Under the pieces are notes generated by a model. It was given only the letters and a program-made list of their open reading frames with translations, had not been told where the DNA came from and made no database searches. A stretch of 64,000 nt of DNA from Rhodosorus marinus CCMP1338 (Eukaryota > Plantae > Rhodophyta): contig JAMWBK010000002.1 in the NCBI GenBank assembly GCA_029953675.1, positions 2,170,001 to 2,234,000 of the forward strand, given 5' to 3'. The translations under genes and the position numbers were made by a program. Shown piece by piece: positions 13,047 through 62,203 of the stretch (position 1 is the first letter of the stretch; every line of letters starts with the position of its first letter).

Positions 13047-14516
13047 ATGGAAATGGACTTATTGCAGATACGGGATAACGGGATGGCGGGAGCATACGGG
13101 AGCGTGAAGCCTGCGAAGATGAGCAAGTTCACGACGAATCTTGGGGACTCGTCAACGCAGCTTGTGATGAAGAGCAGCGCGGATTTGATTGGTGAGGCGA
13201 AGATCATTCAAGAGGGCTGCTTGTTCAAGAAAGCCGCTAACGCGACTCGTCTGGAGTTGCGGGGGCGAGTTCTTGTTTTGGGAACTGGAGAGGTTATCGA
13301 CTTGGATGACTCATGCTTTGAAAGAGGGAAGAAGCGTGAGGAAATTAAGGTGCGGGTGATGTGCGGCGAAAGTCAATTCAGAATGCAGTTCGCTTCGAAG
13401 GATGTGGCGGATAGCTGGTTCAAAAAGATGAGTCAATACACCGACAAGGTTGCCCTTGGTGACTTTGAGATAATCACACCAGTTGGAAAGGGAGGAATGG
13501 GATCAGTTTTCCTCGTGAAGCACAAGGAAACTAATGAACTCTGCGCAATGAAAGTGCTGAGGCGATACTCCGTCGAAGAGAATGAGAAGTCAATGCGAAG
13601 GGCTCTGGATGAGCGCATGGTTCTTGAAATGGTTGCTGGACACCCTTTCATGGTGCAATTGAAGTATGCTTTCCAGACTGAAAAGAATTTGTACATGGTT
13701 ACCGACTTTATGCCCGGAGGTGACCTCCACGACTATTTGCAGTCCCATAACTTCAACTTGTCGGAGGCAGTCGTGAAGCACTTATTCTCAGAAATTTTGC
13801 TTGCGATTGAGTACCTGCATGGGCTTGGAGCAGTGTACAGGGACTTGAAACCCGAGAACGTTCTCTTGGACAAGAATGGTCATATTAGGCTAGCAGATAT
13901 GGGATTGACGAAGATTCTGGAAATGGGCAGGATGGGAAGAACCAGGTCGTTCTGTGGAACTAAGAAGTTCATGGCCCCGGAAATCATGAAGAGGAAGGGC
14001 CATGGACAGGCTGCTGATATGTGGTCTCTCGGAGTGTTGCTGTTCTCCTTGCTTACTGGATTCACCCCGTACTCCGATCCGAGCTCATTCGTTCTGGAAG
14101 AGCTATCTTTCCCGAAGAAGGTGTCTCAAGACGCTACTGACTTGATCAGGAACTTGCTGCAACCAGAGAGCTCGCGGTTCACAATTGATCAGGTGAAGAA
14201 CCACAAGTGGCTTGAGGGAGTAAAGTGGGAGGATCTGTATGAGCAGGCGTACGAACCTGTTCCGGATGTTTTTGAAACCTGGGAATTGAAGATCCTGGGT
14301 GAGGGAAGGTTCCTGCACACGAAGATGGATAAACTCCGGGACTTGACAATCGGGGACTCGGTGGAGAAGGGAGAGCACTTCGCTCCTCGGCGAACAGGCA
14401 AGCTTCACCGCCTCGTGAAGAGGGGCTCGCGTGTGAATCTCATCCCCGGCTACATGTTTACCTCAAGCGTGTCTCGTGGCAGTTTCTCTGCCGGAAGTTA
14501 TGTCTCGTCCGAGTAG
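13047..14516 (+). CDS. Intronless PH-AGC kinase, paralog of 7913-9232
   Basis: PH beta1-like IIQEGCLFKK and helix DVADSWFKKM. Kinase motifs GKGGMG, AMK, YRDLKPEN, DMG, SFCGT, APE. Shares RRALDER and LIPGY motifs with the upstream kinase. Confidence 0.9.
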   Translation: MEMDLLQIRDNGMAGAYGSVKPAKMSKFTTNLGDSSTQLVMKSSADLIGEAKIIQEGCLFKKAANATRLELRGRVLVLGTGEVIDLDDSCFERGKKREEIKVRVMCGESQFRMQFASKDVADSWFKKMSQYTDKVALGDFEIITPVGKGGMGSVFLVKHKETNELCAMKVLRRYSVEENEKSMRRALDERMVLEMVAGHPFMVQLKYAFQTEKNLYMVTDFMPGGDLHDYLQSHNFNLSEAVVKHLFSEILLAIEYLHGLGAVYRDLKPENVLLDKNGHIRLADMGLTKILEMGRMGRTRSFCGTKKFMAPEIMKRKGHGQAADMWSLGVLLFSLLTGFTPYSDPSSFVLEELSFPKKVSQDATDLIRNLLQPESSRFTIDQVKNHKWLEGVKWEDLYEQAYEPVPDVFETWELKILGEGRFLHTKMDKLRDLTIGDSVEKGEHFAPRRTGKLHRLVKRGSRVNLIPGYMFTSSVSRGSFSAGSYVSSE

Positions 14517-16337
14517 ACGTATGGTGATAATAATATTGCACATAGAATGTAACAATTTCAAACTATTTTAAAGCTCACTTATATTAATATAAAGTATGTT
14601 CACGGGCTGAAAAAACCCCAACAATGAAAAGAAATCTTGCACAGTCAATGAAAACCAAACAAGCGTAAGAAGTATGAGCCACCCTTACAACGAAAAAACA
14701 GTCTTGTACAAGCAAAAAAAAACCAAACAAGCCTCGAGGCTCCGTTGCTTGAAAAGAGAGGGCTCTCAGCTCTTGCGGAGGACGCCTTAAACAGGCGGAG
14801 TAGTAGAGATATGTGGCGACTATACCACACAAGCGGTGGGGCGACACCGCTTGCTTGCCCGACTCTTAATGCTCTAAACGAAAACAGGGCTCATGCTGGT
14901 GGGAGAATACCAATCATCTCAACAACTGAAAGGGCAAGGTAGAGCGAGGCGCATATCTTCACGAGACCCCCCCCCTTACAGCTTCTTCCACGGTTTCTTC
15001 CACCCTGCTTCGTAGCGCCGAAAATTCCGCTTTGATAGTATTGCAGTGATTCCATTCTTTGAGTCTGACTTGCTTGTACTGAACAGCGCCCTCCACGACC
15101 TTGCTCGAGTACCTTATTCGGGGACCTCAGCCTCCCATTAAAATGACGATGATTCCAATTTCTCATGAACGGCTGGTGTCAGTGAGGTGAAAGTCCAGCG
15201 GCAATTCTGCGGTTCCAGCAAGTACCAGGTCTGCAATGAGGCGCTCCGGACAACCAGGAGCAACAGCGGGCAGGGGCGAGGATGGGCGCCAAAAAAAAAC
15301 CTATTTTCTAGATAGTTTCTCTTGGAACCCCGTCTGGCAACTTGGGTTTAGCCTAGCCTTTTTCTTCTCAGTGTTGTGGTCTCTGAATAAACGATAAGGA
15401 CAACTCGATGATCAATGGAATGACTTCAAAATGCTCGTCGAGCGGCCGCACAAGTCTCCCCGCACAAAGCTCAAAAAAACAACAATTTGGTGGATAATCA
15501 GATCCATTCCACTTCATCAAATACAAACGAAAACAATATCTTAATTAACCAATTATGTCTCTGTTTGAAACAGAATTTCAATAATATTTATATTATTATT
15601 TACGAACACAAAGAATAAGGGTGTATAATGAAAAAACAAATAGGAACACATTCTCGGCGGATAAATTTAGAACTGATTCATTGGCTTACGGAATAGGTTT
15701 TTCCAAAATAATATTGTGAATACAGGTTTGGAATCACTGTAAGGTTTGGGCATGGACGAGCCAAGATATGAATTTCAAATTTTTCTGGGTGTGTGCATGG
15801 ACATGCGATTTTGGATCATTGATCTGGTCTATGTCGGCACGGCTCGGCTGACACCTTTTTAATTTAGTAGTAGATCTCTCTGCCTCAACGGCGTCGCCTA
15901 GTTGTGTGATCGCATCGCACTGTGGAGACGATCGACCCTGTAGTTATCTGGTGTGAACCTCTCTTGAACTGAGTTTATTAGCAACCGGCAGTTCCCATTG
16001 CTCAGCAGCAAGACCCTTCAGAAGAGAGGGGAATTGGCTCACTCTTGAAACCACTGAGAAACGGGACTCGATGTTATGAATCACGCTTCATCGTCACACT
16101 GGCGGAGCTCTTCGAACTTCAAAAAGTGCCTCACCACGATCAGGATGCGTATGAACGCTCTGTTGTGATGACAGTCAAAAGCCTAAAAGTCTCACAGTTT
16201 CTTTACATCAATCAAGAGCAGGTAATCAATTTCTGTTCCCCACCAAAGTCTGAAATCTAAAAGTTGGTTTTGTTCAAGTTGAGTAAACTTTCAGCAAAGT
16301 TGATAATTGTTATGCCCTATGGAGGCATCTCCATCCG

Positions 16338-19682: not shown

Positions 19683-20987
19683 TCACTGACTCTCATAAAT
19701 CCGCCGAATGTCAGAAGTTGTGGATGGAATCATCGTCACCGGGCACCTGCTGTGCTCTTCTACATATTCAAAAATGCATCGATAGCAGTACGCAAAACCT
19801 GAGGTAGTCTGCGTCCAATTTCAGTTGGAGAAGAAGAACGCGAAGAGCTTAGCGGCGAAACCCGAGCACGCGAGCAAATATGCCCGAATCAGTGTTCGCA
19901 TGGGTCTACTTACGCAAGCTGCCGGGTTTGTTCTCTTCTTGCGACAGATTGGACAATCATCTTTGGACCTTGGCAGGCCCGCGTCAGCACTCTGTGATTG
20001 ACCGATGGGCTCTGGTGGCTTCAAGATTGCATTGGACTTCCTCGAGGAATGGTTCTGCAGACACAATGAGAGGCCCTGGTCTTTCAGAAGCGGCGTGGCT
20101 TCTTGCACCACGGGTAGGCGCGAATCCACATGGACGTACCTCAACGCGATAATAGTACTCGATAGCTTTGAACGCGAATACGCCAACGATCAGGCCGTAC
20201 TTGAAGCCAGTCAAAACGGAACTGAGGAAACGCCAGAATTTGCTTTTCGGGAGGTCTCTTGGTCCGGGCTGTCTCATAGTGACCTGCATTTCTTTTAGCG
20301 ACAGTCGTCTCACAATTACTGTGGAAGGGAACGAGAACTTCAGCACTCCCGCGGAATCGTTTTTAACAGTTCAGAGGAATTCGCCTTACATCTTTGCATA
20401 TGCAGAAGAGGAGAAAAATATTGAATCCTCTCGAATAAATACAGCAGGTTATATGCAAGGTGCACCAAGTCGTAAGCTGAGCTTAGAAAAGGGTACAGCC
20501 TGATTAGCGCTGACTTCAGTCTCGCTCTAGGATGTTGCTCATCCCTTTCAACATTCGAACTCAGCCCTTGGAGCAGTCTGGTCGCGTTTCCTCCTGAAAC
20601 GCGCTCGTACAATTCATCAAACTTGGATTTCAGGTATGGAACCATCACGTTGCAGAGCAAAGAGGTAGCAATGCTCTTGCGAGGCAAGGCCGCAAGCTCA
20701 GAATTGGCTTCGAACGCTGACTTTGCGCAGTCTCTTCGCAACGAGTAGAAGGCTTCGGAGATTGAACCGCTCGACCTCACGAGCGAGTTCCACTCCAGGG
20801 AGAAATGGAGTAACAAAAAGCACTCATCCGAATACGGTATGAGCTTAAAAAAAAGCGGCTGTCTCACGGCCAGAACCTCGAGAGCGAAACTCACGGCAGG
20901 TCGAAGCGCCAAAATCAGTTTCTCCTGTGCGTACATCTCAAAGAAAGATGGGCGCAACTCGCCGTTTATGGCACTTGTAAAAAACAT
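19683..20987 (-). CDS. PEX12: Peroxisomal RING ubiquitin ligase subunit PEX12; 4 exons
   Basis: N-terminal RPSFFEMYAQEKL. Spliced C-terminal RING CPICRKKRTNPAAC|TTSGFAYCYRC...RCPVT. Three GT-AG introns restore the frame. Confidence 0.9.
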
Positions 20988-21737
20988 ACTGCCTCCGGGC
21001 TCTCCCTTACGCACGAATTAAACCGCTCTAGGCCAATCCTGCATCTCAAGACTTGTACATAATCTTGCCCAAACCTTTGCAAAGCTGACAACCCCCGATC
21101 CTCGCTTAATCTCTTGAAAGCTTCTTGCTTCGAAACTCCCTGCAACATTTTTTCGCCTTTCTCCCACCGACACTTACCACTTTCGCTCTTACTCTCTTTT
21201 CCGAGTAGGAGAGCAAAACGTCATCTGATGATGGAGGACAAATCTTGGGAATTGCGATCATTTCTCAAAAAATTTCAGGCAAACTGCTTGAGTGGAACAT
21301 TTGATTTTGGCCTGATCGATCAAGTTCTACGTCATGAGGAGAAAGTCGCCCGCGCGTGGGAATCATTCACAAAGTTTTAGAGTTGGACATCATGATGTGG
21401 ATGGTATGGATAGGAAATCAAGGACGTGAATTATGTTCAGCTCCTGAAACGTGGTGGTGGGTTTAAGCGGAGCAGCTTGACCTTGTCCTCACCCCTCTGC
21501 AGCACCTTTTGTAATCCTGATGCTTTGCGCTTCCGCTGCACATTGATGGCCCGGCCGTGTTCAAGGGGTTTCTCCCTGTCAGACGACGTGGGTCACCTTA
21601 ATAAGCATCAGAGCTCCGGTCATCACCCGGGCTACGGGAGCTTTGCGGCACTTAGCTGCGAAGTTGAGTTTTCTTGTTTTTGGATATGTCCCTCAACAAC
21701 GGTTATTAGAACTACACAACAAGCTTAGTCATTACAG

Positions 21738-28948: not shown

Positions 28949-30337
28949 CTAGGTGATAGCCTGCATTGTGTTCTTCTGGCCTACTGCCGGCTCATGGAAC
29001 GAGTCTCGACGATTATCGATATTCTCACCGGCGTTTCCAGTAAACAGGCCCCCAAATATTTGAACAATTGAGCCGAGAGTATTCTTGCCATCCTCTGCAT
29101 TCTTCTCGTTTCCTTCGCTGCCATGAGAACTCGAGCGATCCTTCCTTTCCGTGCTAGTGGATTTGTCTAAGTTATGGCAAAGGCTCGCGTAGAGAATCTT
29201 AACAACGCTGGATTCTTCCGAGCGCAGTTGCTCCTCAACAGTGGACTCAGTACCCCATCCCATATCCGTCAACCACTGCACCACCTCTGAGTCTGGGTGC
29301 GCAAACACTTCTTGCGCTGCGTGTTTGCACTTCTCCTCAACCTCTTTGTACTTGGGGCGCCCGTTACCCGAAAACCAACTATGATCCCATACTTGCTGCA
29401 TGCTTGGCCTCGCTTCCGGGTATTTCACTACCATCATTCTGATCAGACCGGCACAGTCTTCACTGAGATACTGCATTGGGCAAAACCAAAAAAAATCGGT
29501 TAACTACAATGCTAGCGCTTCGTACGAAGCACTTCTGAGGCGCCTACCATTGGAACGTAAAATCTCCCCTGTCTCACTTTCTCCATCAAGCGTGTGAGGT
29601 TGTCGTCGTCGAAGGGTAGACTTCCCGTTACCAGTACGTACAAAATAACGCCACAGGCCCACATGTCTGCTTGCCGGCCGTTGTACAGTCTACCTTCCAG
29701 AACCTCGGGGGCTACGTAATGCGGTGAACCGCAGCAAGTAGCAAGAAGCGAAGTCGGCTTGATGTTCGAGGACAACCCGAAGTCCGCAAGCACCAGCCTT
29801 CCATCCTTGCTAAGCAGAAGGTTTTCCGGCTTTAAATCACGATGACAAACGTGTCTATCGTGACAGTGCCTCACTGCGGCGACCAGCTGCCGGAAATACT
29901 TGAGCGCCTCCTCCTCGTCCAGCTTCCCATTTTCGACCAGGTGCGTATACATGTCTCCTCCATCCATGTACTCAAGAACGAGCACAATCTTGTTCGGCGT
30001 TGAAATTACCTCGTGGAACTTGATAATATTTGGATGATCGAGCAACCTCATCAACGCCATCTCCCGCTTCAACAAGGTATGCAAGTGAGGTTTTTCCTCC
30101 AGCTTCTCCTTCTTAAAAACTTTCAAGGCAACCTTCTCTCCAGTTTCCGCGTTCCTCCCGGCATAAACTTTGGCTACAAGATGAAGAAACACAACACGAC
30201 CCTGTTAGAAACGACTGCGCCGACAACATAGAAAAGCAAATCCACGCCTCGGTCTTACCTGAAGAACCCTTCCCAAGCAGCTCCTCAACCACATACTTCC
30301 CATACCCCTTCCCAGGGGCCGCGCTCTCGTTGCACAT
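28949..30337 (-). CDS. BRSK/SAD/Gin4-type AMPK-related kinase; 3 exons
   Basis: HRDLKPEN, DFG, CGSPHY and LPFDDDNLTRLMEKVRQGRF (BRSK-like), followed by a UBA-like segment. Introns 30174-30258 and 29471-29547. Confidence 0.88.
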
Positions 30338-32662: not shown

Positions 32663-32906
32663 CTGTCGAAGACCGTGTGGTGAGGGTATCCTCAAGACTC
32701 TTGCTGATGAGTTTCCAAAGTGATCAGTGTGGATGTTGTTTAGTCGGTCTGTCGAAGACCGTGTGGTGAGGGTATCCACAAGACTCTTGCTGATGAGTTT
32801 CCAAAGTGATCAGTGTGGATGTAGTTTAGACGGTCGTGTGGTGAGGGTATCCACAAGACTCTTGCTGATGAGTTTCCAAAGTGATCAGTGTGGATGTAGT
32901 TTAGTC
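32663..32906. repeat. Three near-identical tandem copies of a ~70-bp core (periods 86 and 75 bp)
   Basis: CGTGTGGTGAGGGTATCC(T/A)CAAGACTCTTGCTGATGAGTTTCCAAAGTGATCAGTGTGGATGT(T/A)GTTTAG starts at 32674, 32760 and 32835. Confidence 0.95.
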
Positions 32907-33559
32907 CTTGGCTGTTGTACAAGCGCGAGCGTTCGATTGGCATGTGGCGTGATTTCTTGACGCAATGCCAATCTCGGCCAAAAACCAGCACCAGTATCCT
33001 CGCCTGTCACTCGCCCATGTGCACAGGGTAGTCTCTGGCAGCCTGCTGCAGCGCCCCCCGCAAAGATGACATGTCAAATGCTCAAGCGCAGTCCAAATCT
33101 TTGTCTCCAAATGGTAGAGCGGTCCCCGGAGCATCCCCACACTCAGCCCCGCGGTATGCCAACCAACATACTCAACTCAATCGTCTGCCAGGCAATATAC
33201 TCAACTCGGTCCTCAGAGACGGGTGACTCGAACCTGAAAACTCCCTCCCAAAATATGTACTAAACGACAGTTTGCCCTCTGAAGGATAAAGACTGTGGCG
33301 CGGGAAAAATTGATGTAGTATCGAATCTGCTTCTTGCTACTGGCAGTCTGGGGCAGCTGATGGACCGCTAACCATCGAGCATCCGCTACGGCTTCCTCAT
33401 CAAATTAAGCCAGGCGCTCGCTTGTGTTGTCGTGTTTCAGTCTGTGCCAAGTCATGATCGGTTTAATCGGATTCGAAGGTCTCCGAATGAGGTTCTCTAG
33501 AAGGGGCGTAGAGAGCGTGCCTTCCCGAACTCACTCCACCAATCATCGGCATATCTTGC

Positions 33560-34150
33560 CATAGTCGATGAGCCAACGGTCCCAGCGTAGGCGAGGGCAC
33601 TACTTCGTTCAGCCACGGACGCCGACAGTGGCACCTAGATTCTTGACATTCCATCCCGCACGACCTTTGTGTCAAGGCAACGACTCATCGCAAACATTCG
33701 ACAACTTCTCGGCGTATCGCGCTCTGTCACCTTGCCCTTCCTGCCGGGCCACGCACGATATCAGCGGGTACCAGCCGCTCCGCGCTGCTCCCGTTCTCCA
33801 CGAATGCGAATCCACCGACACCACGAGCTGGTGGACACTGTACCGCGACTGCTGAGAGACTGGGGTTATGATGACGTTGCTGTGGAACCAGGACCCATGA
33901 AGGGGAAACTGTCTCACCGAGCACCAGATATTCAGGCGGAGCAGCCTCGGACGCACCGTTTCTGCCGTCGTACTCACGAGCCCGTCCCAGACCCAGCACC
34001 TGCGACAAACAGCTAGCCTTACCGCCGCACAGAGCAAAGTCAACAAAATACCCCGTGACCACTGCAGAGCCAGAGGACTTTATCCCGATGGCCGCGAAAC
34101 ACACTGAAGACTTGCAGCACTTACAATACCAGACCTTCGCCGCGATGAAC
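33560..34150 (+). mobile_element. Degenerate CRE/R2-type non-LTR retrotransposon, restriction-like endonuclease region
   Basis: RALLRSA...SGT*ILDIP...IRQLLG, C...RIHRHHELVDTV...VEP...RAPDI and, across frameshifts, VLTSP...AA..K..KY...FIPMA. This matches the RH/E/PD RLE layout. Stops and frameshifts are present. Confidence 0.75.
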
Positions 34151-34429
34151 CGCACCTGTGGAGAGGCAAGTCTTGGGTTGCACACTAGGTAGTTGTGAGA
34201 GCGCCAGTAGTCATAACAGTTAGTGTTTACTGAGGATTTAGTAGTCACACACTTGTGACTCCCCTTTTCCCTATCGTAGGACGCCCACCCGGGGTTGTTT
34301 GTTTTCCAGTAAACCATGAGTCAGACTCAAGAAACGTACAGTCGGGAAAGAGCATCAAGACGGGCACTGCAACACTCCTGCAACCAAGCACCCGCAGCAC
34401 TACTTAAGAATCCGCACACCTGTTCGCAA

Positions 34430-34560
34430 CGACAACAGCAGTTCATTCAGAGCCCGTCTACCCTGAGGAGCGGAAAGGGAGACGCTGAAGATGAACTAAT
34501 GCGACGAATCGATGGGCAAGCGCAGACTGCAAAGCCTCAGCGTTGGTAACCTCGGGCGTA
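34430..34560 (-). mobile_element. Second CRE-family 3'-end fragment
   Basis: Reverse complement ...CTCAGGGTAGACGGGCTCTGAATGAAC resembles + strand 36131-36158 CTCAGGGTAGTTAGGCTCTGAATAAAC. Peptide ends HLQRLPFRSSG* versus HQRLISRFSG*. Confidence 0.55.
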
Positions 34561-34689
34561 TACCCGGACTCCTCAGGGTTCCCCATAGTATTCGCTGCGG
34601 CTCCCCTACGGCGGTGCGGGCAGGTGCTAAGCCGCAGGGGAAGAAAGGGAGCGTAAAAAGTTCACATATGCATGTCCGAGTACGACATA

Positions 34690-35503
34690 ATATCCCCTGC
34701 ATAGAAGGGAAACATGGAAGGTCGGATGTACATCCATGTTTTAAGGCAGCGTCCAGGAGTGTAGGAGTAGCAACAGCAATAACCTTGCCCGCAATCTTGA
34801 ACGGTCCAAAATATCGGGGTCTGAATGCCTTCGGGTCGCGCAGAGGCAAGTTCGTCGTTGACAGCAGCACCAACTCGCCAGGAGCAAACTCCTGGTTGTG
34901 CCTACATCAGGCGCACCACGGAGTTGCAGAAGTATGTTGAAAAAGGTTTGCAAAGGAAGCAAGACATCCTATGGACATCATCGCATCTGCGTCCGCACAG
35001 TTCGTATCCGACCTGTAGCGGGAACATCACGCAGAACCTCCAGGAGATCGTTTCGGCATTCATAAAAACAGTCAACCTGCTGAAGCAACGGAATCGCTGG
35101 CCTAGTCTCTGAGAGGATGGGCCAACACTTTTGAAGTGCCAGTGCGATTTACAAGCGGCAGTGCAAGTTTGGCCCTCCGGGTGCGCTGCTGAATATGTCT
35201 TGTCAGGACGTGACAATACGGGCCCAGCAACGAAGCAAGCACGGTATCGGCGTACAGCTCATTCTTCAACAGATCCCTGATTCAAGTCGAAGATATCTCC
35301 GACTCTGCGGCCACAACCATGAATTAGGGCGTCCACAGCCAAGGCGTGGGTTCCGCATGGTGGGTGACAACGGAATCCCAGGTTTTTTTTGATCACAGAC
35401 CCATGTGAACGAGGTCAGATACCTAGCATTCACGGATGGCGAGGCAGCCGGCAGACCGATGATCACAAGACGTGCAGGATGTGTGTGATGGCGATGAGAC
35501 CAA
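34690..35503 (-). mobile_element. Degenerate Ty3/gypsy pol fragments (integrase C-terminal GPY/F region; possible RNase H end)
   Basis: FAPGELVLLSTTNLPLRDPKAFRPRYFGPFKI then, frameshifted, TLP*NMDVHPTFHVSLL. Upstream DHRS and AVDAL remnants. Confidence 0.75.
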
Positions 35504-35644
35504 CCGAAACGTGCGCGAGTTCACCTGCGGACCTGACCGCCCGAATTCTTCTTAAATTCAGATTTTTACTCCGTCCACTTTCCCAATTCAGGACGTTTCA
35601 ATTCGGAACATTTTAAAGACACTCTGTGAAACATCATCAGGCAA

Positions 35645-36564
35645 GCCGGAAAGAAAGGAATATACCATACCACGGATTACACATTCGGGCCGGTCCTACC
35701 CGCCCAGAAGCCAGGAGCTAGGAAAAGGGAAATATGCCCACCTGACCTGCCACTACTGCGGGAAGAGGGGACATTCACAGCGCATCTGCTGGAACGACCC
35801 TGCGAACGATTCACGAAATGTGCGCACTTCATTCCCACGACAACCACAGTCACCGCGCTGGAGACGGCGAACTAGTTCTTACGACATTGGACAAGGTTCG
35901 CGGGATGTCAAACCCTACTTTTCGCGACTCGGCGGTGACATACCGGTTTATCCCCCTCATTGTTGAATGCTTTGGCTTGATAGATAGTGTAGGTTCTCGC
36001 TGGCTGCGCGGTGTCTTTCGCAACGACCCAGGGCGTCTAGATAGTCTGCTCACGAAGCTTTCTTTGACCCTGTGGCGCTCAAATGCTGCTTTGTTTGTAG
36101 ACGCGCGTCATCAGCGCCTTATATCTCGCTTCTCAGGGTAGTTAGGCTCTGAATAAACGTGATGGATGGAGTACCTTCTGACATCGTCTCTGACCGTGAT
36201 ACTCGTTTCATGAGCCTGCTTGACCTTCAGGGAACGCATCAGTTCCTGCCAAAACAAGCTCATGAAACGAGTATCACGGTCAGAGACGATGTCAGAAGGT
36301 ACTCCCGCGAACCTTATCCAATGTCGTAAGAACAAGTTCGCCGTCTCCAGCGCGGTGACTGTGGTTGGTCGTGGGAATGAAGTGCGCGTATTTCGTGAAT
36401 CGTTCGCAGGGTCGTTCCAGCAGATGCGGTGTGAATGTCCCCTCTTCCCGCAGTAGTGGCAGGTCAGGTGGGCATATTTCCCTTTTCCTAGCTCCTGGCT
36501 TCTGGGCTGGTAGGACCGGCCCGAACGTGTACCCCGTGGTATGGTATTTTCCTTTCTTTCCGGC
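35645..36564. repeat. Long inverted repeat (foldback) of gypsy gag/integrase sequence
   Basis: 35645-35905 matches the reverse complement of 36303-36564 with about 11 differences in 261 nt. 36168-36215 and 36258-36305 form a perfect 48-bp stem around a 42-nt loop. Confidence 0.95.
35906..36167 (+). mobile_element. 5'-truncated CRE-type non-LTR 3' end inserted in the left arm of the foldback
   Basis: YRFIPLIVECFG...LSLTLWRSNAALF...RFSG* is the RLE C-terminal FxP/E-xG and LxRxNA pattern, followed by AATAAA. It interrupts GCGGGA|GTACC with GGA present at both junctions. Confidence 0.7.
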
Positions 36565-37130
36565 GTGCGTGGTTCCCGGTCTCGGTTGTCCCGTTTCAGC
36601 CCCTGGCTCGCGATGTCGGCCCCTTCGGTTTTGAGGGCCAGAGCCTGGGCCTCCTCAAATGTTGAAACATCCTGAATATAGAGAAGTTTCTTTATCTCCG
36701 GTTTCAGGCCTTCAACGAACCGGTCGCATTTTTCGGAGTCCGAGAATGCACCTATTTGGATTAGGCACTTGTTAAAATATGCCGAGTAGGCTGCAACCGA
36801 CGTCCGCTGTGCCGCACGCGCTAATTGTTGCATCCGCGGTGTAGAACTGCGTTTTAAGGAGTTTCTCGAAGTCTTCAGAGGTCTCGGGTTTGTGGGAGTC
36901 CGGAATCAATGACCACCAATAGGATGCGACACCGGTCAAATATCCCTCCGCCAAGGTAATTTTGTAATCGTGGTCGTCGTCGGGTAGGCGGGCAAGCTTA
37001 AGTTACGTTCTGAGGTTGTTCAAGAATGTACTGATAGCAGCGCGTCCCTTTTTCCATCGTATGCCCATGGTTGAGGGCCTGTATCTTCATTAGAGATGTC
37101 ATTCTTCTCCTTCCTCAGGAACAATTCTCT
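36216..37130 (-). mobile_element. Internally deleted Ty3/gypsy element: gag (frameshifted) fused directly to integrase core
   Basis: YDGKRDAAISTFL...KITLAEGYLTGVASYWW, FVEGLKPEI, zinc knuckle CHYCGKRGHSHRIC, then TALETANLFLRHWIRFAGVPSDIVSDRDTRFMSLFW. No protease, RT or RNase H lies between. Confidence 0.9.
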
Positions 37131-37142
37131 GCGATGAGACCA
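37131..37142 (-). promoter_or_regulatory. Primer-binding site TGGTCTCATCGC
   Basis: On the minus strand, ...CGTTACA-AAT-TGGTCTCATCGC: canonical LTR-end CA, a 3-nt spacer, then TGG, immediately upstream of gag. Confidence 0.7.
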
Positions 37143-37145
37143 ATT

Positions 37146-37740
37146 TGTAACGTTGGTCTTATTAGCTGTCTCGGATCCAAGTATTAAGTTTAAATCACCC
37201 TTTGTAATATATTGTTCTTATCTTGGATACCTTCTTCTCTGGCTCTAATCCTGAGGATGGAGGTCGTAGCTTCCGTATTTATAGGCTTTCAGGTCATGAT
37301 CTGGACTTGTGAGACTACTATTATTAGCCCTGTCGTACTATATCTTGCCCGCTGGCGGCCATCTTGGCTGTTCTATATTTTGTACGCTGGCTAAACTCCT
37401 GACGTCTTACTTGAAGATGACTTTTGTCCTGGTTTCAATTTCTTCGTAGATCGGCTTTTCCTAACTCTTCCTAACTCTTTTAGCGTTCTCCCACACGCTA
37501 TACCCTGAGAGAGATGTCATTGTTACCGTATTTATAGGCTAAGTTTGGCGTGCCAAATCTTGTCACGATTCTCCACTTTAGCCCGTAGGTTGGGCTAGGC
37601 CGTGCTAGGTTTAGCACTCTGTCTGGCCCATGCTAGTGCTAATCACTCGTCACGTTCTGTGCTCCTTTCTGGACAGCTTGTCCTTTTTATCAACCAGGAC
37701 AACCTGTCCTTATTAAACGACAGCCTGTCTCATTTTGACA
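37146..37740 (-). mobile_element. 5' LTR of the gypsy element (~595 bp; outer end tentative)
   Basis: TG...CA termini (TGTAACG at 37146; TTGACA at 37740). Two identical AGCCTATAAATACGG TATA-containing 15-mers at 37273-37287 and 37526-37540. No partner LTR found. Confidence 0.6.
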
Positions 37741-38047
37741 GTCTGTCCTGGATTTTTTTTCGCCGGCGAATGCGACGTCGACGGACTTCATATTATTTTA
37801 GTTTTCCGGGGGTTTTAGGCTTGGCATTGGCCTCAGTGATCAATTTTAGAGCGTTTTCGGGATTGTTGAGGATGGACAATGAATTTTTTCGGATATTGGG
37901 CAGTCATAGAGGAGAGAAGGGATTGAGGGGGTGTTTGTCGTAGGAGGGGAGGGGGGGGGTGGAGAAGGTCTGAGGCTTGAGAAGGAGGGCCTTTTAGGTT
38001 TTGTTGTGTTTGCAGTTGTTACGTTTCTTCTTTCATTTTTAATTAGT

Positions 38048-38751
38048 ATGGTTAGTGGAAAGCAGAAGCCGAACAACCCCATGAGGGAGTTGAAGGTTCA
38101 CAAGTTGGTGCTGAACTGTTGCGTTGGAGAGTCTGGAGATCGATTGACGAGGGCTTCGAGAGTGCTGGAGCAGTTGACAGGTCAGCAGCCGATTTTGTCC
38201 AAGTCGAGATTGACTATTCGAACGTTTGGTATCCGGCGAAACGAAAAAATCTCTTGCCATGTCACCGTGCGTGGGGACAAGGCAGAAGAAATTCTGGAGA
38301 GGGGCTTGAAGGTTAAGGAGTACGAGTTGCGTTCAAGGAACTTTTCCGACACCGGTAACTTTGGATTCGGAATCACCGAGCACATCGATCTTGGCCTCAA
38401 GGTAAGGAAACAGACAGAAGAAGCGAGCTTGTAACCTTCGGGAATCGCTGACCCACTAGCGTTACTGTATGCAGTACGATCCTACTACTGGTATCTACGG
38501 AATGGACTTCTACATTGTGCTGAAGCGAGCTGGTGACCGCGTGTCGAAGAGGAGAAGGTAAGGGTGTTGGAGGACGCATCTACTTCTGGGCATGCCGAGG
38601 GGGACCTGCTGTCCGCTTTTTCTAATGCATGTATTTTGCGGGTTTTCTTTGTCTTAGGTGCAAGAATTCTGTTGGAAAGTTCCAGCGTGTACTTAAGGAG
38701 GATGCTATCAAGTGGTTCCAAGCTAAATATGACGGAATTGTGCTCAACTGA
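38048..38751 (+). CDS. RPL11: 60S ribosomal protein L11 (uL5); introns 38402-38474 and 38558-38657
   Basis: [52 protein letters not shown]|[23 protein letters not shown]. Confidence 0.97.
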
Positions 38752-40041: not shown

Positions 40042-41301
40042 ATGCAAGTACAGTTCTTGGACGATTCGACGAAGGACGATCGTCTGGGGACTGAAGGAAG
40101 GAGTCCGTCCGGTTCAACAGTTCATGGTGGACAGCAGGATGCGCAGACGATACATGTTATAGATGAGAAGGATGCCGGTCCCGTGGATTTTGGTGAAGAA
40201 GAAGTGGAGGCGATTGTCAACTTACCGTTCGTAGATCAACAACCAGAAATCTCGCTTGAACATAGCGATACGGTGGCTGAACCTGACCTGCTTGAAGTTT
40301 TTCAGGGGCGTGATGAGAACGTGGTTCATTCGGAGCCAACACCCAACAGAGCGGAAGCAGCTCATGTGGAGGATCTTGCTAGTGAACTCCCACCCTTGGC
40401 CGAGCTGGAAACTAGAGTAAACCTAGACGGAAAAGGAGAGCCTGCTCGAGACGCATCTAAACGAATTCATTTCACGCCGGCAACTGTTCGACAGAAAAGG
40501 CTCTCTGCTGGTCGCCGTCTGGACCCTACCGATACGTCAATGTACGTAGAAGACGATAAGGGCCTAGACGCGGGAGAGGCAACTCTGAAAAAGGAAGCAG
40601 AAGACTTGAAACATCGGACCGGAGGAGGGCACGGCCTTCTGAAGGTATCCACTGCCCGCCTAGAAACATGCCTGGCTCAAGACCTTGGCGTTTTAGACCT
40701 GTCAAACCTTGGCTTGGATGATTCGCAATTTGAGGCGATATTCCCGCGGATCGTATCAGAAGGGGGTCACGTGTGGGCGCTGCTACTCGCTAGCAACAAC
40801 TTGACGAGACTGCCCGAGGATCTCGGGAAACTGGAGCACCTGACGATTCTCAATCTCCGGAGGAACCATCTTAAGTCGCTCCCAGAGTCCATCGAAAAAT
40901 GTCAAAACCTGAGAGAGCTCAACGCAGCTGAGAACGAGCTTGAGTCGTTGCCCTCCGGTCTCTTTGGATGTCCGGTGCTGTCGAGCCTGAACTTGTCACA
41001 GAACCAACTGACGAAGTTGATAACCGACCGTAGCTATGACTTCAAGCTCAGGTCTCTGACCGCACTGAACTTGAGCCATAACAAGATCAGCAAAGTCCCA
41101 GATGCCCTCTCACAAGCGCCGCTGACTGTCCTTGACCTTTCCCAGAACCTATTCCAAGGCCTTCCAGAGACGTTCGAAATGCTGACCTCTATAAGAATGT
41201 TTATTATCGATAACAACCCTTGCATAGATCGAATTCCCAAGGCGCTCCTTAGCGGAAACAACGCGATGGCAGTTCTGAGCCACCTCGCCGGTCGGCGCTA
41301 G
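40042..41301 (+). CDS. Leucine-rich repeat protein with acidic disordered N-terminus
   Basis: About 7-8 LxxLxLxxNxL repeats (LLLASNNLTRLP, LNLRRNHLKSLP, LNLSQNQLTKL, LDLSQNLFQGLP). Single exon. Confidence 0.85.
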   Translation: MQVQFLDDSTKDDRLGTEGRSPSGSTVHGGQQDAQTIHVIDEKDAGPVDFGEEEVEAIVNLPFVDQQPEISLEHSDTVAEPDLLEVFQGRDENVVHSEPTPNRAEAAHVEDLASELPPLAELETRVNLDGKGEPARDASKRIHFTPATVRQKRLSAGRRLDPTDTSMYVEDDKGLDAGEATLKKEAEDLKHRTGGGHGLLKVSTARLETCLAQDLGVLDLSNLGLDDSQFEAIFPRIVSEGGHVWALLLASNNLTRLPEDLGKLEHLTILNLRRNHLKSLPESIEKCQNLRELNAAENELESLPSGLFGCPVLSSLNLSQNQLTKLITDRSYDFKLRSLTALNLSHNKISKVPDALSQAPLTVLDLSQNLFQGLPETFEMLTSIRMFIIDNNPCIDRIPKALLSGNNAMAVLSHLAGRR

Positions 41302-50387: not shown

Positions 50388-53300
50388 TTAAGATGCTTTG
50401 CTCTTTGCCTTCCGAAGCTTCGAGTAGAGACTTGCCAGTTCCGGTCCTTTCAACGCCGTTTTGCACGCAGCGGCGACATACCTCCATCCATGTACTGGGT
50501 TTCTCTTGGATCTCTCGATTTCGTTTCCAATGCTAACAAGGCACTCCCTGGTTCTCCTTATCTTCACCTTTCGGTCTTCTCCTTCCTTGTTCCCTTCGCT
50601 CAGTTCACGCAGCTCCAGTAGGACTTCTTTCTGACCTGATAACTCCTCCTCCCAACTTGGTGGTTTCTTGGTGCTGCGCGTGGACCTGCTGGACATCTTC
50701 CCCCGCTTGCCTTTGGATGACTTCCTCGAAGCATCCCGGACGAGCTCCCCAAGCAACTTAGTCGCTCTCGCTGCGACAGATTTTCTGCTTGTGCTGGCTA
50801 TCTTATCCGCAAGCTTCAGCTCCTCATCGCTGCCGATAGCTTCCCAGTTGCCGTACCCGTGGCGGTGAATTCCAACGAGCATCATCGCGTCGTTGCTGGG
50901 TAGCCAGCCGCTCTGTCTTCCTCCACTCAAGCCCCTTGGGAGACGAAAGCGAATATCGTTTTCGTACTCGGAGATACGTCTAGCAAGCTCCCCTAGTTCA
51001 ACAGCTCTCCTGACCACTTCTTTCGCGGCTACCGTCTCACCAGATATTACCACCGTGCCTTTGTCAGCAGTTACCTTTTTGGCATCAGAAAGACCCTTGT
51101 CCAAAATTTCGGCAGCTTCCTCCCTCGCAATCTTCTCCGTGAGATTGGCATCCGCAAGGATTTCCTCGATCCGCGCACTACTGCCGAACTTTTTGAAGCT
51201 TCTGATAAGTGCCGCCGAATCCTTCTTGCTTAGTCGGTTATCCGCGGTCGCTACTCCATTCGCCACTTTCGTTCTTCGTCTGCTCGACGGTGGCTTGCGC
51301 TTAGCTGTGGGTGACTCCTCTGTATACTTTTTCGTCTTGGTTATCCTTCTGGGCCCCAGGTAGTTCAAGTTTTCCGCAACAGCTTCATCTTGTTCCTCTT
51401 GGGGTATCACGCGATTCCAGAAATCCATATCAGACTCCTTTGCGAGTTGCTCTTTGTCCTTCTCCTCGTTCTGTTCTGCCTCATCAGCGAGCTGCTGCAA
51501 TGCATTCTCTCTTTCCTGAAGCTTCTTGGCTGCCGCTTCGGCCTCGCTTAGCTGGGTTTTTACGGTTGCAGGCGCTTCCTCCTCGTAGTCCTCCGTGGCA
51601 AAGTCTGCCCATTTGAAAGCGTTCAAGAGCGAATCACCTACACTTCCAGCCGCGGCAGCTTCGTTCTCATCTTGTTCTTTCGGAGCTCGTTCGAGTATCT
51701 CGTCTATGTCATCCATCGCTGGAGCCTTCTCCTGTTGCTTTTCCCCGGCTTTCTCGTTCTCCTCGTTGTCCTGCTTCTCCTTCTCGAACAGACGCTCCGC
51801 TCCAAACCGTAAAATGGCGGACAGTTCCTCCTTTTTGAAGGTCATCTTACCGGGCGCGTCGCCTCCTTCCACTCCATGGATGACGAGATGCTCGAGTACC
51901 CGTTTCCGTTTCGCCCTTTCCAGAATGTCCTCCTCTACAGTATCGCGGGACAGCAAACGGAACACTTTGACATCCTTTTTCTGTCCGATGCGGTGTGCTC
52001 GCGATTCAGCCTGGAGGTCGTTCTGAGGATTCCAATCGCTGTCAAAAATGACCACTGTGTCGGCCGTGGCGAGGTTGATTCCCAGTCCACCAGCTCTGGT
52101 CGAGAGCAGGAACACGAAATCAGTCGAATCTGGGGCATTGAAATGGTCGACGGATTTCTGGCGTATCTCGTTCCCCATAGACCCATCAAGTCTCTGCCAA
52201 GCAAAGCCCCTCATTCTGCAGTAGTCTTGCAAAATGTCCAACATTCGCACCATCTGCGAGAAAACCAGTACTCGATGCCCCTTTTCTTTCAACCTCAGGA
52301 GCAGCTTGTCCAGTAGAATCAGCTTGCCCGAGGACCGGATGAGGGCATTGAGCTGATCCGGGTTTTCCATGTCCTCAACATTCGGAAATAGGTAAGGATG
52401 ATTGCAGATCTTCTTCAGCTCGACAACAATATTCTGCAATGATGTGGCGTTCGACGGACCAGACCCCTTTCTCACAGCGTTCAACTTGGAAAAGTTTCGA
52501 GTGAGGATCCACTTGTAATACTTCTGCTGTAGTGATGTCAGCCCCACTCGAAGCACGGCGTATGTTTTCGAAGGTAACGACTTCTCCACATCTTCCTTCT
52601 GTCGACGAAGGATGTACGGACGTAGCTCCGCGTGGAGCTGGGCTATGCGTTCCGCATTCCTCAACTCGCTGAAGCTATACTTCTCCTCAAAACTCTGGGC
52701 TGAAACGTATGTGGATGGATTCAGGAAATTCAACAAAGCCCAAAGCTCGCGAATGGAATTCTGAAGCGGCGTCCCAGTTATCAAGAGCCGATTTGCTGAG
52801 GTGAACGCACTTAGGGCCTTGTGCATGGAGGACTCCTCGTTCTTGAGCCTATGCGCCTCATCCACAGCGATCAAGGACCAGCGGAATTCGCTGACAAGAT
52901 AGTCCATATCAGCCAGAACTAATTCAGGCGTAGTCAGCAAAACATGGAACTTGGCGTTGTTCCTATCAGTCACAAACTCAAATCGACGGATAACGTCCCT
53001 AGAGTTTCCATCACCAACGTATACGATTACATTTAAACTCGGCAGCCACCGAGAGAACTCCCTGTGCCATGCAGCTATCGTCGACAACGGTACAACAACA
53101 AGGAACGGACTTTGGACCTTCTTCACCTTCGCCAACCAGCCAATACAGCAAATGGTCTGCAAAGTTTTGCCCAGTCCCATTTCGTCCGCCAATATTACGT
53201 TTCGGTCGTTCACCCAGCTATATGCAAGAAAGTTAAGGCCCTCCAACTGATAATCCCTCAGTTTTCGGCCGTCGTTTCCGTAGCTCAGATACTCAGGCTG

Positions 53301-54862
53301 TTCTACAATCCTTCTGAACGGTTTTCTACTTTCTCTATGCGAGAACGGATTAAACGACCCCGCAGCTCCATGTGCGTCAGAATTCCGATCAAGAAAGTCG
53401 TCAATCTTCGCTAGATCCTCCTCCGTGTTAAGACTATTTGGAGCCTCCCATGTACACTCGGCATAAGATAGGTCCGACCACTTTGCCAAATACTCTAACG
53501 CCCCTTCAGCGTTCCGTCTGTCGCTAATGATTCTCTCGAGCTTTTGGTAGGTCTGAACTGCCTCTTGAACCTGCTCCCGTGCCATTAGATAGTCTTCCCT
53601 TTCATCTGGCCCGATTTCGTTTCGATCCAGGTACTCCAGCGTCTCCTCCACGCGCTTAATAAAGTTAGTTACCTTCTTGTACCCCTTGAACATGCTAAGC
53701 TCAGAGAGTGTATGCCAGGAACACTGGCGATATGACAGTCGGTGCCATTTGATCATGAAACTTGATTCGGAGGGAAGAAACTCAAAAGGATCATCCACTT
53801 CTGCTTCTTCCAGTTCTTCTCCATCATCGCGCTTGTTCGATCTGTAGTCCAGAACTTTTTCAATTAGGAGCTCCTGTTCAACTGGGGCCATAATATCAAA
53901 TGGTTTCTTTTTCCTCGTCTGGATTTCATCCTCTAGTGACTCCTCGTCAGTATGATCGGCTGCTTTCTCGCTCTGTTCAAAATGTTCCTGAGCCAGGTTC
54001 TGTAGCTTTCTTCCTGTTCTACCAATTGCACCACCCGGCTCATAGTCTGCATCCGAATCCTGACTCTTGCTGTTTAATACATGCTTTTTGAGCTTAATCT
54101 GCACGGGCTTCAGTGCAGCATTGCTGCGCTTCTTGGGATTTCGCCGTGGAGAAGAATCCCAGTCATCGGTATCTACTTCGCTATCGAAATCGCCAGAGTC
54201 GCTGAGCTTTCGTTTTCTCTTTGTGATGGTTCTGGGCTTTGACTTTTTTCTTTTAGGTTTGACTGTAGAGGGCCATGAATAATTAAATCAGCATCGGTCA
54301 GAAACGAATCTCGAATCACAGGCAATCAGAACTCGATGAACATCGACGGACATGCTGTCTTGCGAATGAAGATTCGATCCTTACCCTCGTACTCAACGTC
54401 GGACGAGTGATCGCTGCTTTCCTCGCTGAGGTTGTACGCCTCAAAGTCGTCATCCTCAGCTGCCCAAGAATTGTTCGTTTTTCTCCCCGGGCCTTTTTTT
54501 ATTTGCACTTCCTCATCAGCATCATCTGACAAGTCCTGCATTTCCTCCGCTGCCAATTTTTTTGCCTCAGCCACTTTCTCTTCCTCGGCACGTTTTTCAG
54601 CTTCCTCGAGCGCTTTGAGCTCCGCAACCAAGTTTCCGTCCTGAGCGTTTACATTAAACATGGGATCAGTGTCACCCTCTTCAGCATCTTCATACTCCTT
54701 TCCACTCTCCACCACGACCTCTTCGTCGGAGTCCTCGTCTGATGAGGGGCTGGACTCCGCCACTTCCTCGTCTCCCTGTACAGCATCCTCCCGCATACCA
54801 TCCTCCTCTTCAGCCTCGTCCTCATGTTCACTCTCAAATCCGTTGCTTTCGTAAACATCCAT
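50388..54862 (-). CDS. CHD1: Chromodomain-helicase-DNA-binding protein CHD1/2; true start may be further upstream
   Basis: Tandem chromodomains, DEMGLGKT, DEAH, QAESRAHRIGQ, SANT-SLIDE-like region (HGYGNW) and DUF4208-like tail. The acidic upstream exon joins via an intron near 54264-54384. Confidence 0.93.
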
Positions 54863-59604: not shown

Positions 59605-62203
59605 ATGGATGCGAGACCTCTTGTGGATAAGACCAATGCTCAGTTTGAGTCGAAACTCAGGGTACCTGGAGTAAGTACGAAAGGACCACCCCGATCATCA
59701 CCGAAAGGGGGGGATGGCGCCCGTCAACGAGGTGGCCAAAGTCAGGCGAGGCAGGTTGCACCTCAACGACGACGAGCAGGAGAAAGTAGGACAGCTCGGC
59801 CCAAAGTGCCACGGACTGCTGCGACGAATGGAATGCAGCATGTTCCAGAAGAGTTGCTGATAACGAAGGAGGAATTCCAACAAAAAATGGAGGATTTGTC
59901 AAAGCGGGTTGAGGACAAGGAGAAGCAGCTTAAGGACGAGATCGAACGTCACCAGAAAGAATCTCTCGCAAACTCTCATCAAGTGATCAATGCCCTCCAA
60001 ACCAACTCAACCACCCTCATGGAACAGACGAGCAATCTCGCAGCCGAAGCTCACATCCTGAGGACCGAAAAGGACAAGGTCGTGGAGCAGCTCAACTCGG
60101 AACAGCGACGGGTATTCGAGTTGACAAGTCAAGTGGAAAGGGAGCAGCAATCGACTGCCGAACTGAAGTCTAGCCTGGAGCTTGCTCAGAGGAGAGCCGA
60201 TGAAGCTGAGGCTTTGTTAGACAACGCTGAACAAGCAAGGAGCAAGCTGCAGAGTGAACTTGAGCAAGCTTCTGCTGCGAATAACCTGGACCTGGAAAAG
60301 CAGCTGGAATTATCCCAGGATAAAGAGACGATTCAGGATAGAGAGATCGCAAGACTTCGGGCGGAGATCAATGAAAGCCTGAATAGATTCGATGATTGCT
60401 CAGAAAAGCTGAAGTCGATGCACAACGATCTCGATCAAGCGAATGCAAAGAAAAGTTCCCTTGAGAGTGAGTTGAGAACGGCACAGTTTCGATGCGAGGA
60501 GATAGAACGGGAAAAGATCTCAGTTGAATACGAACTCGAAAAGTCGAGAAAAGAACATGAAAGAGAGCTAGCGAGTGTGCGAGGTGCATTGGACGGATCA
60601 GAGAAAGAGAGAAAGTCTTGCGAGGAGGAGCTTAACAGGAATAGATCGACCAACAAGATACAAGAAGATACGATTGCGCAACTGGAGTTGGTACTTGAAA
60701 GCTCACGACGGGATGGTTTGCAGAGTACTGAAGAGCTGAAACGAGTAATCGATAACTTCGAACTCGCCAAGAAAACGGAGAGGCAGCTGGAGGACGATCT
60801 ATCAAGATTGAAGGAAGAGTTGCGAAACGCCGAGAAAGCAGCCGATGAATCTGCACGCAGCATTAGTGAGCAGCAAAGCACCGTTGACTATCTTTCACAG
60901 AGGATTTTGGATCTAGAAAACGCATTGCAGACAGCCAAGGATGAGTTTACTCAGCTAGAAACGGAGCACAACGAGTTGAAGCTGAAGTCAGCGGATCAGG
61001 AGCAACAGATTCGGGACTACAAGCTATTAACCAAGAAGCTCAAGAACGAAGTGCAGGAGTTGAAGGGAAATATTCGAGTGTTCTGCAGAGTGAGGCCAGG
61101 GTTGAATGGACACGAAGCGAGTTCAGACATCTACAAACTTAATACCAGAGACGGGATGATCACGGCAGCTAATCCAGCCGTAGCTCCAGGAAAAGGAGAT
61201 CAGTGGAAGTTTAAATTCGACAACGTTTTCCATGCGCTGTCTACTCAAGAACAGGTCTTCGACGAGGTTTCACAGGTGGTTGAAAGCTCGTTAGATGGTT
61301 ATTCTGTCTGCCTGTTTGCGTATGGGCAGACAGGATCTGGTAAGACCTACACTATGCTTGGAAACGGCAGTGCTGCGATAGAAGAGCACGGAGTTATCCC
61401 GAGGGCCACCAGGCTAGTGTTCGACAGAGCCAACGAATTGCAAGAGGAGGGCTGGACGTACACGCTTAAAGCTTCATTCCTTGAGATTTACAACGACGAT
61501 ATCTGGGATCTGCTTCCAAAGGACGGGGACGAAAGGACCCCACTGAACATGAGAATGAGCAAAGGTTCACAATCTAGACATGTCCACGGGCTGAACGAAA
61601 TTCAAGTCACCAGTCCAGAGCAAGTCAATATGCTGATCAAAAAGAGTATGGCGAAGCGCGCTACAGCCGCGACTAAGATGAACGAAAAGTCGAGTCGAAG
61701 TCATTCCGTTTTCCGCATACACATTAGCGGGCACCGAGAAACTTCAAACCAGACTGTGGAATCAGCTTTGAACTTGATCGATCTTGCCGGTTCGGAACGC
61801 TTGAAGAGTTCTGGCTCGGAAGGAGAAAGGCTCAAGGAAACCCAACATATCAACAAAAGTCTAACAGCACTTGGTAAGGCAGGCCTCTTGCTTTGTGACG
61901 AGACCGAAAGCACTTGCTTCCTCCATCATCTGACTCGGTCATTTTCCGTACCCAACAGGTGACGTCATAATGGCTCTGTCAAACAGAAGAAGTCACATTC
62001 CCTATAGGAACTCTAAGCTCACGGAAGTACTCGAAGACTCCCTGGGCGGAAACTGCAAGACGCTTATGTTCGTAAACGTCTCACCCTCGGAGGCCAGCTT
62101 CAGCGAGTCAATGCAATCCTTGCGCTTCGCTTCAAAGGTAAATTCGGTTGAAATTGGCACTGCGAGGAAGCAGCAAAAGATCGACATGGGCCCTTCAACA
62201 TGA
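59605..62203 (+). CDS. Kinesin-14 (KAR3/Ncd-type C-terminal motor); intron 61874-61958
   Basis: Long coiled coil, neck [15 protein letters not shown]-loop [29 protein letters not shown]|[13 protein letters not shown]. Confidence 0.95.

Follow-up and report, generated by a model that had tools for sequence, protein, structure and literature searches.

Mu killer (Muk) of maize is an inverted partial duplication of the MuDR transposon and represents a rearranged, non-autonomous copy of this element (PMC3440606). Inverted repeats serving as sources of siRNAs are also known as hairpin RNA (hpRNA) loci in Drosophila and as the inverted Ac/Ds duplications which initiate silencing (PMC10317233, bioRxiv 10.1101/2020.01.07.897926). 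A locus of comparable layout is located in the genome of Rhodosorus marinus CCMP1338, a single-celled member of the red-algal class Stylonematophyceae (PMC10250338), within the 64-kb stretch of DNA analysed here, referred to below as the window. Exact look-ups assign the window to contig JAMWBK010000002.1 of assembly GCA_029953675.1; a host kinase encoded in it matches a protein of this contig at 100% identity and an R. marinus transcriptome protein at 92%. The original prediction described it as a foldback derivative of a gypsy retrotransposon and a candidate source of silencing hairpin RNA. The present analysis confirms that an inverted duplication of about 320 bp (311-320 bp) is genuinely present in a gypsy relic of CCMP1338. 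With a probability of roughly 0.78, we consider it to be a genuine and fairly old snap-back duplication within a dead Ty3/gypsy relic, most probably a neutral by-product of transposable element (TE) decay.

The right arm of the duplication (36260-36571, minus strand) contains the C-terminus of gag, the zinc knuckle, a gag|integrase junction and a fragment of the integrase core; this is the original copy, collinear with the element. The left arm is located on the plus strand and is split into an outer part (35638-35902), in which the deletion junction falls at 35801|35802 and the reading frame of integrase is preserved, and an inner part (36168-36213), which is a perfect complement of 36260-36305. 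The two arms are separated by a 46-nt spacer, the loop of the structure (36214-36259, minus strand). It consists of integrase coding sequence, FWQELMRSLKVKQ, and holds a small natural palindrome, CAGGAAC-N6-GTTCCCTG.

Local alignment and a repeat search gave 311 aligned bp with 12 mismatches and one 1-nt indel, i.e., 96.3% identity, in agreement with the value of about 96% estimated earlier. The innermost 46 bp of the arms are matched at 100%, and the longest perfect duplex runs cover 78, 39, 32 and 46(+10) bp. The dimensions given before (48 bp of perfect match, a 42-nt loop and a 306-bp stem) differ only trivially from those found here (46 bp, 46 nt and 311-320 bp), and the limits 35645-36564 proposed at that time place the locus correctly, each end being 7 nt too short. 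The repeat search found no second comparable long inverted repeat elsewhere in the 64-kb window, so chance is excluded as the source of the match between the arms. Minus-strand RNA covering 36620-35600 is predicted to fold into a single long hairpin (-734.5 kcal/mol) with the later insert in the left arm bulged out.

The term "foldback" should be read as a geometric description and not as membership in the FB transposon family. In that family, the mobile unit is bounded by long terminal inverted repeats composed of tandem subrepeats; the assignment was considered and rejected, as the arms are internal gag/integrase coding pieces without subrepeats, and one side of the structure runs on into gag and the LTR.

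Chimeric foldback reads are exact palindromes of read length. The arms described here are just about 312 bp long and differ at 12 sites and an indel, and one of them carries a 265-nt insert which has a homologue of its own elsewhere. Foldback chimeras do arise in long-read libraries and the assembly is Nanopore-based, but the locus is interior to a 3.48-Mb contig which was polished three times with Illumina data. Arm divergence and the one-sided insert lead us to judge an artefact, be it a Nanopore foldback chimera or a misjoin, extremely improbable. The CCMP1338 assembly is a chromosome-level one, built by NextDenovo from 6-kb size-selected Nanopore reads and polished with Pilon (PMC10250338). 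The locus also shows that this Nanopore assembly is able to resolve palindromic structures of this kind.

Beyond its outer end, the right arm continues in the normal order of the element: gag extends upstream to 37103 and is preceded by a primer-binding site (PBS) and an LTR. The 5' LTR (37147-37740, minus strand, 594 bp) has the TG...CA ends (TGTAAC...TTGACA), and its U3 contains, on the minus strand, two TATAAATACGG boxes and four palindromic GACAnnnTGTC motifs. The PBS, TGGTCTCATCGC (37131-37142, minus strand), is located 4 nt downstream of the LTR. The identical 12-mer precedes gag in the homologous R. marinus transcript L013 and occurs for a second time in the window, at 35491-35502. The 3' end of another R. 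marinus transcript, L004, contains integrase followed by a sequence matching the LTR region 37312-37385 at 77% nucleotide identity. The assignment of the LTR is supported by the PBS of L013 and by this run of L004 from integrase into LTR-like sequence; the LTR expected upstream on the minus strand is thus backed by its TG...CA ends, a PBS shared with L013 and the L004 match. It is the single LTR copy in the window: neither sensitive BLASTN nor the repeat search found a second one in the 64 kb, and the element, being truncated and rearranged, has no pair of flanking LTRs with a target-site duplication. No Rfam families and no tRNA genes, and so no tRNA to match the PBS, were found in the window.

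Integrase homology to L004 is unbroken through the spacer up to about 36214, and the inverted copy begins at 36213. It follows that the spacer is natural integrase sequence and that the left arm is the secondary copy. An additional C at 36368 is found in the right arm only, being absent from both the left arm and L004, and was gained after the duplication.

The gag region with its CCHC zinc knuckle (36409-37103, minus strand) has 67% nucleotide identity to positions 266-953 of L013, a transcript which spans U5, PBS and gag and corresponds to 37103-36417 of the window. At the protein level, gag is 63% identical to an R. marinus Ty3-capsid-like protein (P0271). It is non-functional: the reading frame changes near 36817-36830, as can be seen from the coordinates of the tblastx match to L013. 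Alignment to homologous R. marinus transcripts places the gag|integrase junction of the right arm at 36402-36413 on the minus strand, with the break at 36408|36407. The corresponding break in the left arm is at 35801|35802, and the arms do not differ from each other in the sequence flanking it. About 2.6 kb was lost at this point, comprising PR-RT-RNaseH and the N-terminal part of integrase. Both the break points and the surrounding sequence thus agree with the earlier observation that the same deletion junction is present in both arms. Since both arms carry it, the deletion should precede the duplication; this order of events, already suggested in the original prediction, is the parsimonious one. 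Since PR-RT-RH is deleted, gag is frameshifted and the second LTR is absent, the locus is a dead Ty3/gypsy relic.

A 240-aa ORF (36111-36833, minus strand) passes through gag, the knuckle, the integrase fragment, the spacer and the antisense of the arm, and then enters the insert. This ORF is accidental, as it is the extra C at 36368 that brings the integrase fragment into the gag frame. Pfam returned weak matches to Ty3_capsid, Retrotrans_gag and zf-CCHC for its product. In an exhaustive HMMER search two separate blocks of homology were found: residues 2-150 correspond to gag with the CCHC knuckle, and residues 153-217 to the integrase catalytic core, located at about 1040-1220 of gypsy polyproteins of 1300-1600 aa. 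Pairwise BLASTP gave the same two-part picture, with matches to gag 62-191 and integrase 1138-1177 of P0134 and to gag 134-282 and integrase 1159-1217 of P0130. Taken together with these alignments, residues 153-211 fall at about 1140-1220 of polyproteins of 1400-1600 aa. The two top matches of the exhaustive HMMER search (P0121 and P0122) are unrelated tandem CCHC-repeat proteins and were discarded. In the polyproteins which are the best homologues of gag and the integrase fragment, integrase comes last, at about residue 1150 of 1400-1600. PR, RT and RH, from which the order of pol would be read, are deleted in this copy.

A search of 5.8 billion proteins returned a single gag from R. marinus, at 63% identity, along with one distant match and no Logan contigs. 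Scanning of metagenomes and MMETSP with the 240-aa ORF gave only distant integrase-core matches in unrelated contigs. Nearest to the element are contigs from the transcriptome of another R. marinus strain: L013, L003, which represents the 3' end of gag, and L004, which covers integrase and the 3' end of the element.

The later insert interrupting the left arm (35903-36167, plus strand, 265 nt) consists of a unit of about 255 nt and a GT(GATG)2 tail. It contains a 78-codon ORF, a stop codon and a 3' tail ending in ...GGCTCTGAATAAAC. That it is a later insertion into one arm only, as was stated originally, is seen from the empty site GGTTCGCGGGAGTACC retained in the right arm. The layout of this site, GGTTCGCGG-GA-GTACC, would be compatible with a possible 2-3-nt (GA/GGA) target duplication or microhomology flanking the insert.

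The insert unit is 86.6% identical to positions 244-497 of L014, another R. marinus transcriptome contig, and has the same 5' and 3' limits there; GATG-type repeats trail the unit in both cases. In both copies the 78-codon ORF begins at the first ATG of the unit, and L014 has an in-frame stop just upstream. Differences between the two ORFs are distributed over the three codon positions as 8/4/21, and this excess at third positions is a sign of purifying selection. The last ~31 nt of the insert recur twice more in the window, at 34441-34472 (minus strand) and 15364-15393 (plus strand). Judging by these sequence comparisons, the insert behaves as a discrete short retroposon-like unit. As the second copy starts at the same 5' end, it is more readily seen as such a unit than as a randomly 5'-truncated LINE.

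The insert had previously been labelled as a piece of a CRE element. Non-LTR retrotransposons of the CRE clade encode a reverse transcriptase with a C-terminal restriction-like endonuclease and insert site-specifically. The insert encodes 78 aa only, its product has no sequence match in Pfam or PDB, and the AlphaFold model is of low confidence (pLDDT 59); the label is thus unsupported.

The foldback lies in a nest of transposon fragments. The deposited annotation contains no genes between the kinase at about 30.3 kb and RPL11 at 38.0 kb, and neither reverse transcriptase nor PR or RH is found anywhere in the 64-kb window. Immediately to the left of the foldback (35491-35637, minus strand), the second PBS at 35491-35502 is preceded by 135 nt of U5-like DNA. 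This flank is what is left of the 5' end of a different LTR element, to which the inverted arm has become joined. Further left are a diverged gag-like fragment lying, like the left arm, on the plus strand (35232-35306), an integrase SH3 fragment (34660-34903, minus strand) and a piece resembling the L004 region downstream of integrase (33297-33446).

In such a nest, two truncated copies of an internally deleted non-autonomous family could in principle have been inserted independently and come to lie tail to tail by chance. A common deletion junction would be expected among the members of one such family, and the leftward gag-like fragment is oriented like the left arm. However, LTR elements integrate as LTR-bounded units and not as internal fragments, both copies break within 46 nt of one integrase position in a mirror-symmetric manner, and the arms are 96-100% identical, while the leftward gag-like fragment has no detectable nucleotide similarity to them. 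Two independent insertions are thus highly improbable. The possibility that 35232-35306 represents a diverged continuation of the left arm was considered separately and rejected: besides lacking nucleotide similarity, it is not collinear with the arm, and a PBS of the opposite sense is located between them.

Fold-back inversions are characterised by a mirror-image duplication with a short unique spacer. Microhomology is slight where the sequence turns, the distal end is attached to DNA of unrelated origin, and the intervening sequence is lost. The two copies in the Rhodosorus relic share one symmetric breakpoint with a short spacer, microhomology at the turn amounts to a few nucleotides at most, and the outer end of the inverted arm (35638) adjoins unrelated DNA, namely the U5 and PBS of another element. 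We infer a snap-back from this mirror symmetry, the short unique spacer, the foreign DNA at the distal end and the loss of the 3' half of the element.

The following order of events may be proposed. The first step would have been a deletion of about 2.6 kb in a gypsy copy, which removed PR-RT-RH together with the N-terminal part of integrase and left gag, at its end, fused to the integrase core. Within integrase, close to the small palindrome, a stalled strand or a DNA end would then have turned back on itself over a distance of 46 nt and been extended by about 312 nt complementary to its own sequence, either in the course of hairpin-primed break repair or through replication template switching. 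We speculate that the palindrome in the spacer may have favoured this snap-back. The new end would have been joined to the U5 of the neighbouring LTR element, with the 3' half of the relic lost or displaced. Finally, the arms would have diverged by 3.7%, the original arm gaining one nucleotide and the inverted arm receiving the 265-nt retroposon-like unit.

Both the deletion and the snap-back might instead have been made during reverse transcription, as template-switch and self-priming errors of cDNA synthesis, and the product then inserted or captured at a break. Reverse transcriptases do self-prime by hairpin and jump between templates, comparison of gag with integrase in the relatives reveals a candidate 7-nt microhomology (CGACCCT) at the gag|integrase junction, and the right end of the structure is an intact LTR terminus. 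The left end, on the other hand, is the internal U5 of a different element and not the element's own LTR end, which excludes integrase-mediated insertion of the structure as a whole. Besides, the deletion is common to both arms and hence was already fixed in the template, so that two separate events fit equally well. We regard an origin by reverse transcription as a minor possibility and prefer a snap-back at the DNA level.

The arms of the presumed snap-back are not uniformly diverged. The inner 46 bp are fully identical, whereas the middle 201 bp agree at 97.5% and the outer 64 bp at only 89% (p = 0.005 in a binomial test chosen post hoc), and, with P0271 and L004 as outgroups, most of the derived changes in the outer part are found in the inverted arm. 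The gradient could be due to error-prone synthesis at formation, conversion between the arms near the centre, or chance. Instead of simple decay, it could also indicate that the stem has been conserved or that the arms have undergone gene conversion with each other. The 12 mismatches comprise 5 transitions and 7 transversions, are not preferentially wobble-compatible or pairing-preserving, and include no RIP-like or editing signature. There is no sign of selection in the mismatch types. It should be noted that the gradient counts against the explanation given here as the best one, in which neutrality is the default assumption.

In the original prediction the locus was supposed to act in the manner of Mu killer: a minus-strand transcript driven by the LTR would form long dsRNA, and the resulting siRNAs would silence active gypsy copies in trans. 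The geometry fits this proposal, the 5' LTR and PBS being located upstream on the same strand. The LTR of the relic is the only candidate for a minus-strand promoter; no other promoter points that way, and the neighbouring RPL11 and LRR genes are on the plus strand. A transcript starting in the LTR would cross both arms and fold into an imperfect duplex, about 311-320 bp long and perfectly paired for up to 78 bp at a stretch, and the hairpin is predicted to be very stable, other perfect runs reaching 39 and 46+10 bp. As modelled, such a duplex would be a plausible Dicer substrate. This reading requires an active LTR promoter, RNAi machinery in the alga and near-identical target copies.

Some circumstances are favourable in this respect. 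Transcription of the gypsy family is seen in a different strain of R. marinus, from whose transcriptome the contigs L003, L004 and L013 are derived, and maize Mu killer provides a precedent (PMC3440606). DCL1 and AGO1 are reported as lost in Cyanidiophyceae, but red algae outside this class are reported to have DCL and AGO, with Argonaute present in Porphyridiophyceae, Bangiophyceae and Florideophyceae (PMC9812998, PMC8304369). For Rhodosorus or Stylonematophyceae, our literature search found nothing on RNAi, and the machinery is thus undocumented for this class.

Other evidence speaks against silencing activity. The relatives found, all of them from another strain, have 67-74% nucleotide identity to the relic and are too divergent for siRNA targeting, and the window contains no autonomous or RT-bearing copy. 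An exact-protein look-up of the foldback ORFs (the 240-aa one and a 107-aa ORF of the arm and insert) found no transcript or independent contig in public assemblies and transcriptomes. The LTR, which may itself be inactive, is that of an old relic with a frameshift, located within a TE nest, and the mismatches between the arms are without a bias towards preservation of pairing. On balance, a killer function of the Mu killer type is improbable, and we do not expect the locus to yield silencing siRNAs. A wider version, in which the LTR is active, Dicer and Argonaute are working, the locus serves as a natural hairpin source silencing the gypsy family and the central identity of the arms reflects conversion or selection, is distinctly improbable as well.

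If the killer interpretation were true, red algae would have their first described "killer" locus of transposon origin, and the Mu killer principle would be extended to an LTR retrotransposon of a unicellular alga. Provided that it is expressed and diced, the hairpin would also offer a sequence-defined entry point into RNAi-based transposon control in Stylonematophyceae. As found, the locus provides a clean example of retrotransposon decay, combining internal deletion, snap-back, secondary insertion and fusion with a neighbouring element; on the present evidence, it leaves general views unchanged.

Among known types of elements, the relic resembles internally deleted non-autonomous Ty3/gypsy derivatives in its LTR, PBS and gag, in the loss of PR-RT-RH and in its homology to the Ty3 capsid and gypsy integrase. 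It differs from them in having one LTR and a frameshifted gag, and no other copies were found, so it should be regarded as a relic rather than a demonstrable mobile family. In its geometry the duplication is like the fold-back inversions attributed to break repair or template switching, while the mechanism in Rhodosorus is deduced from the end product alone.

Both Mu killer and the Rhodosorus locus are inverted duplications of a part of a transposon which originated from a rearranged non-autonomous copy and would form a hairpin if transcribed (PMC3440606). Muk is a derivative of a DNA transposon with arms of about 2 kb and owes its transcription to read-through from a neighbouring gene, and both siRNAs and heritable silencing were demonstrated for it. 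In contrast, the arms described here cover about 0.31 kb of retrotransposon gag and integrase, the candidate promoter is the relic's own LTR, and the case is built on sequence analysis. With hpRNA loci, the foldback shares the nature of a genomic inverted repeat with a short spacer, an origin from a selfish element and the potential to be a Dicer substrate (PMC10317233, bioRxiv 10.1101/2020.01.07.897926). The definition of the hpRNA loci rests on siRNAs mapped to them and on targets that are known, whereas the Rhodosorus foldback is known from its nucleotide sequence only. What it has in common with both Mu killer and hpRNA loci is an inverted TE duplication which, according to the predicted fold, is able to form long dsRNA, so the resemblance would seem to be one of potential only. 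The Rhodosorus foldback is a new instance of an already known kind of sequence feature.

The two arms of the foldback are not equally similar along their length. The outer 64 bp (35638-35701 against 36508-36571) are only 89% identical, while identity further in is 97.5-100%, and the derived changes in these outer 64 bp lie mostly on the side of the inverted arm.

The inverted arm is split at 35903-36167 by a discrete unit that resembles a retroposon; it is about 255 nt long and has GATG-type terminal repeats and a conserved 3' tail ending in GGCTCTGAATAAAC. A second copy with identical ends lies within L014 (244-497), which is a transcript from a different R. marinus strain. The unit contains a 78-codon ORF, in which the differences between the two copies are distributed as 8/4/21 over the first, second and third codon positions; this pattern is a sign of purifying selection. 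The 3' tail recurs at 34441-34472 (minus strand) and 15364-15393 (plus strand) of the window.

A 12-nt primer-binding site, TGGTCTCATCGC, is common to the 5' ends of at least two different LTR elements in the window (35491-35502 and 37131-37142, both on the minus strand) and to L013, a U5-PBS-gag transcriptome contig of the other strain (approximately 138-150). No tRNA gene matching it as a primer is located within the 64-kb window. The U3 end of the LTR at 37147-37740 carries four tandem palindromic GACAnnnTGTC motifs (37671-37750), and a TATAAATACGG box occurs twice in the LTR on the minus strand (37274-37287 and 37527-37540). These motifs and boxes are candidate promoter or enhancer elements.

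To the left of the foldback, 33297-35637 is a nest of TE fragments, including a gag-like piece (35232-35306, plus strand), an integrase SH3 piece (34660-34903, minus strand) and a piece resembling the post-integrase region of the integrase-bearing contig L004 (33297-33446, minus strand); none of them is annotated in the deposited genome. Three tandem 86-nt units, 88-97% identical, lie immediately left of the nest (32663-32909). Among the host genes surrounding the locus are those for Not1 (622-1632), kinases (7913-9232, 13047-14516 and about 29512-30296), Pex2/12 (20340-21014), RPL11 (38007-38710), an LRR protein (40042-41301), a CHD-type remodeller (50388-54104) and a kinesin (59605-61962). 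Neither a reverse-transcriptase ORF nor any tRNA gene or Rfam family was found across 1-64000.

A comparable gag-integrase fusion is present in P0125, an unrelated predicted protein (425 aa) of another organism from the representative library, where gag-CCHC is fused straight to the integrase core without protease, reverse transcriptase or RNase H. This join may be an artefact of the gene model, or it may represent a deletion derivative of a recurrent type.
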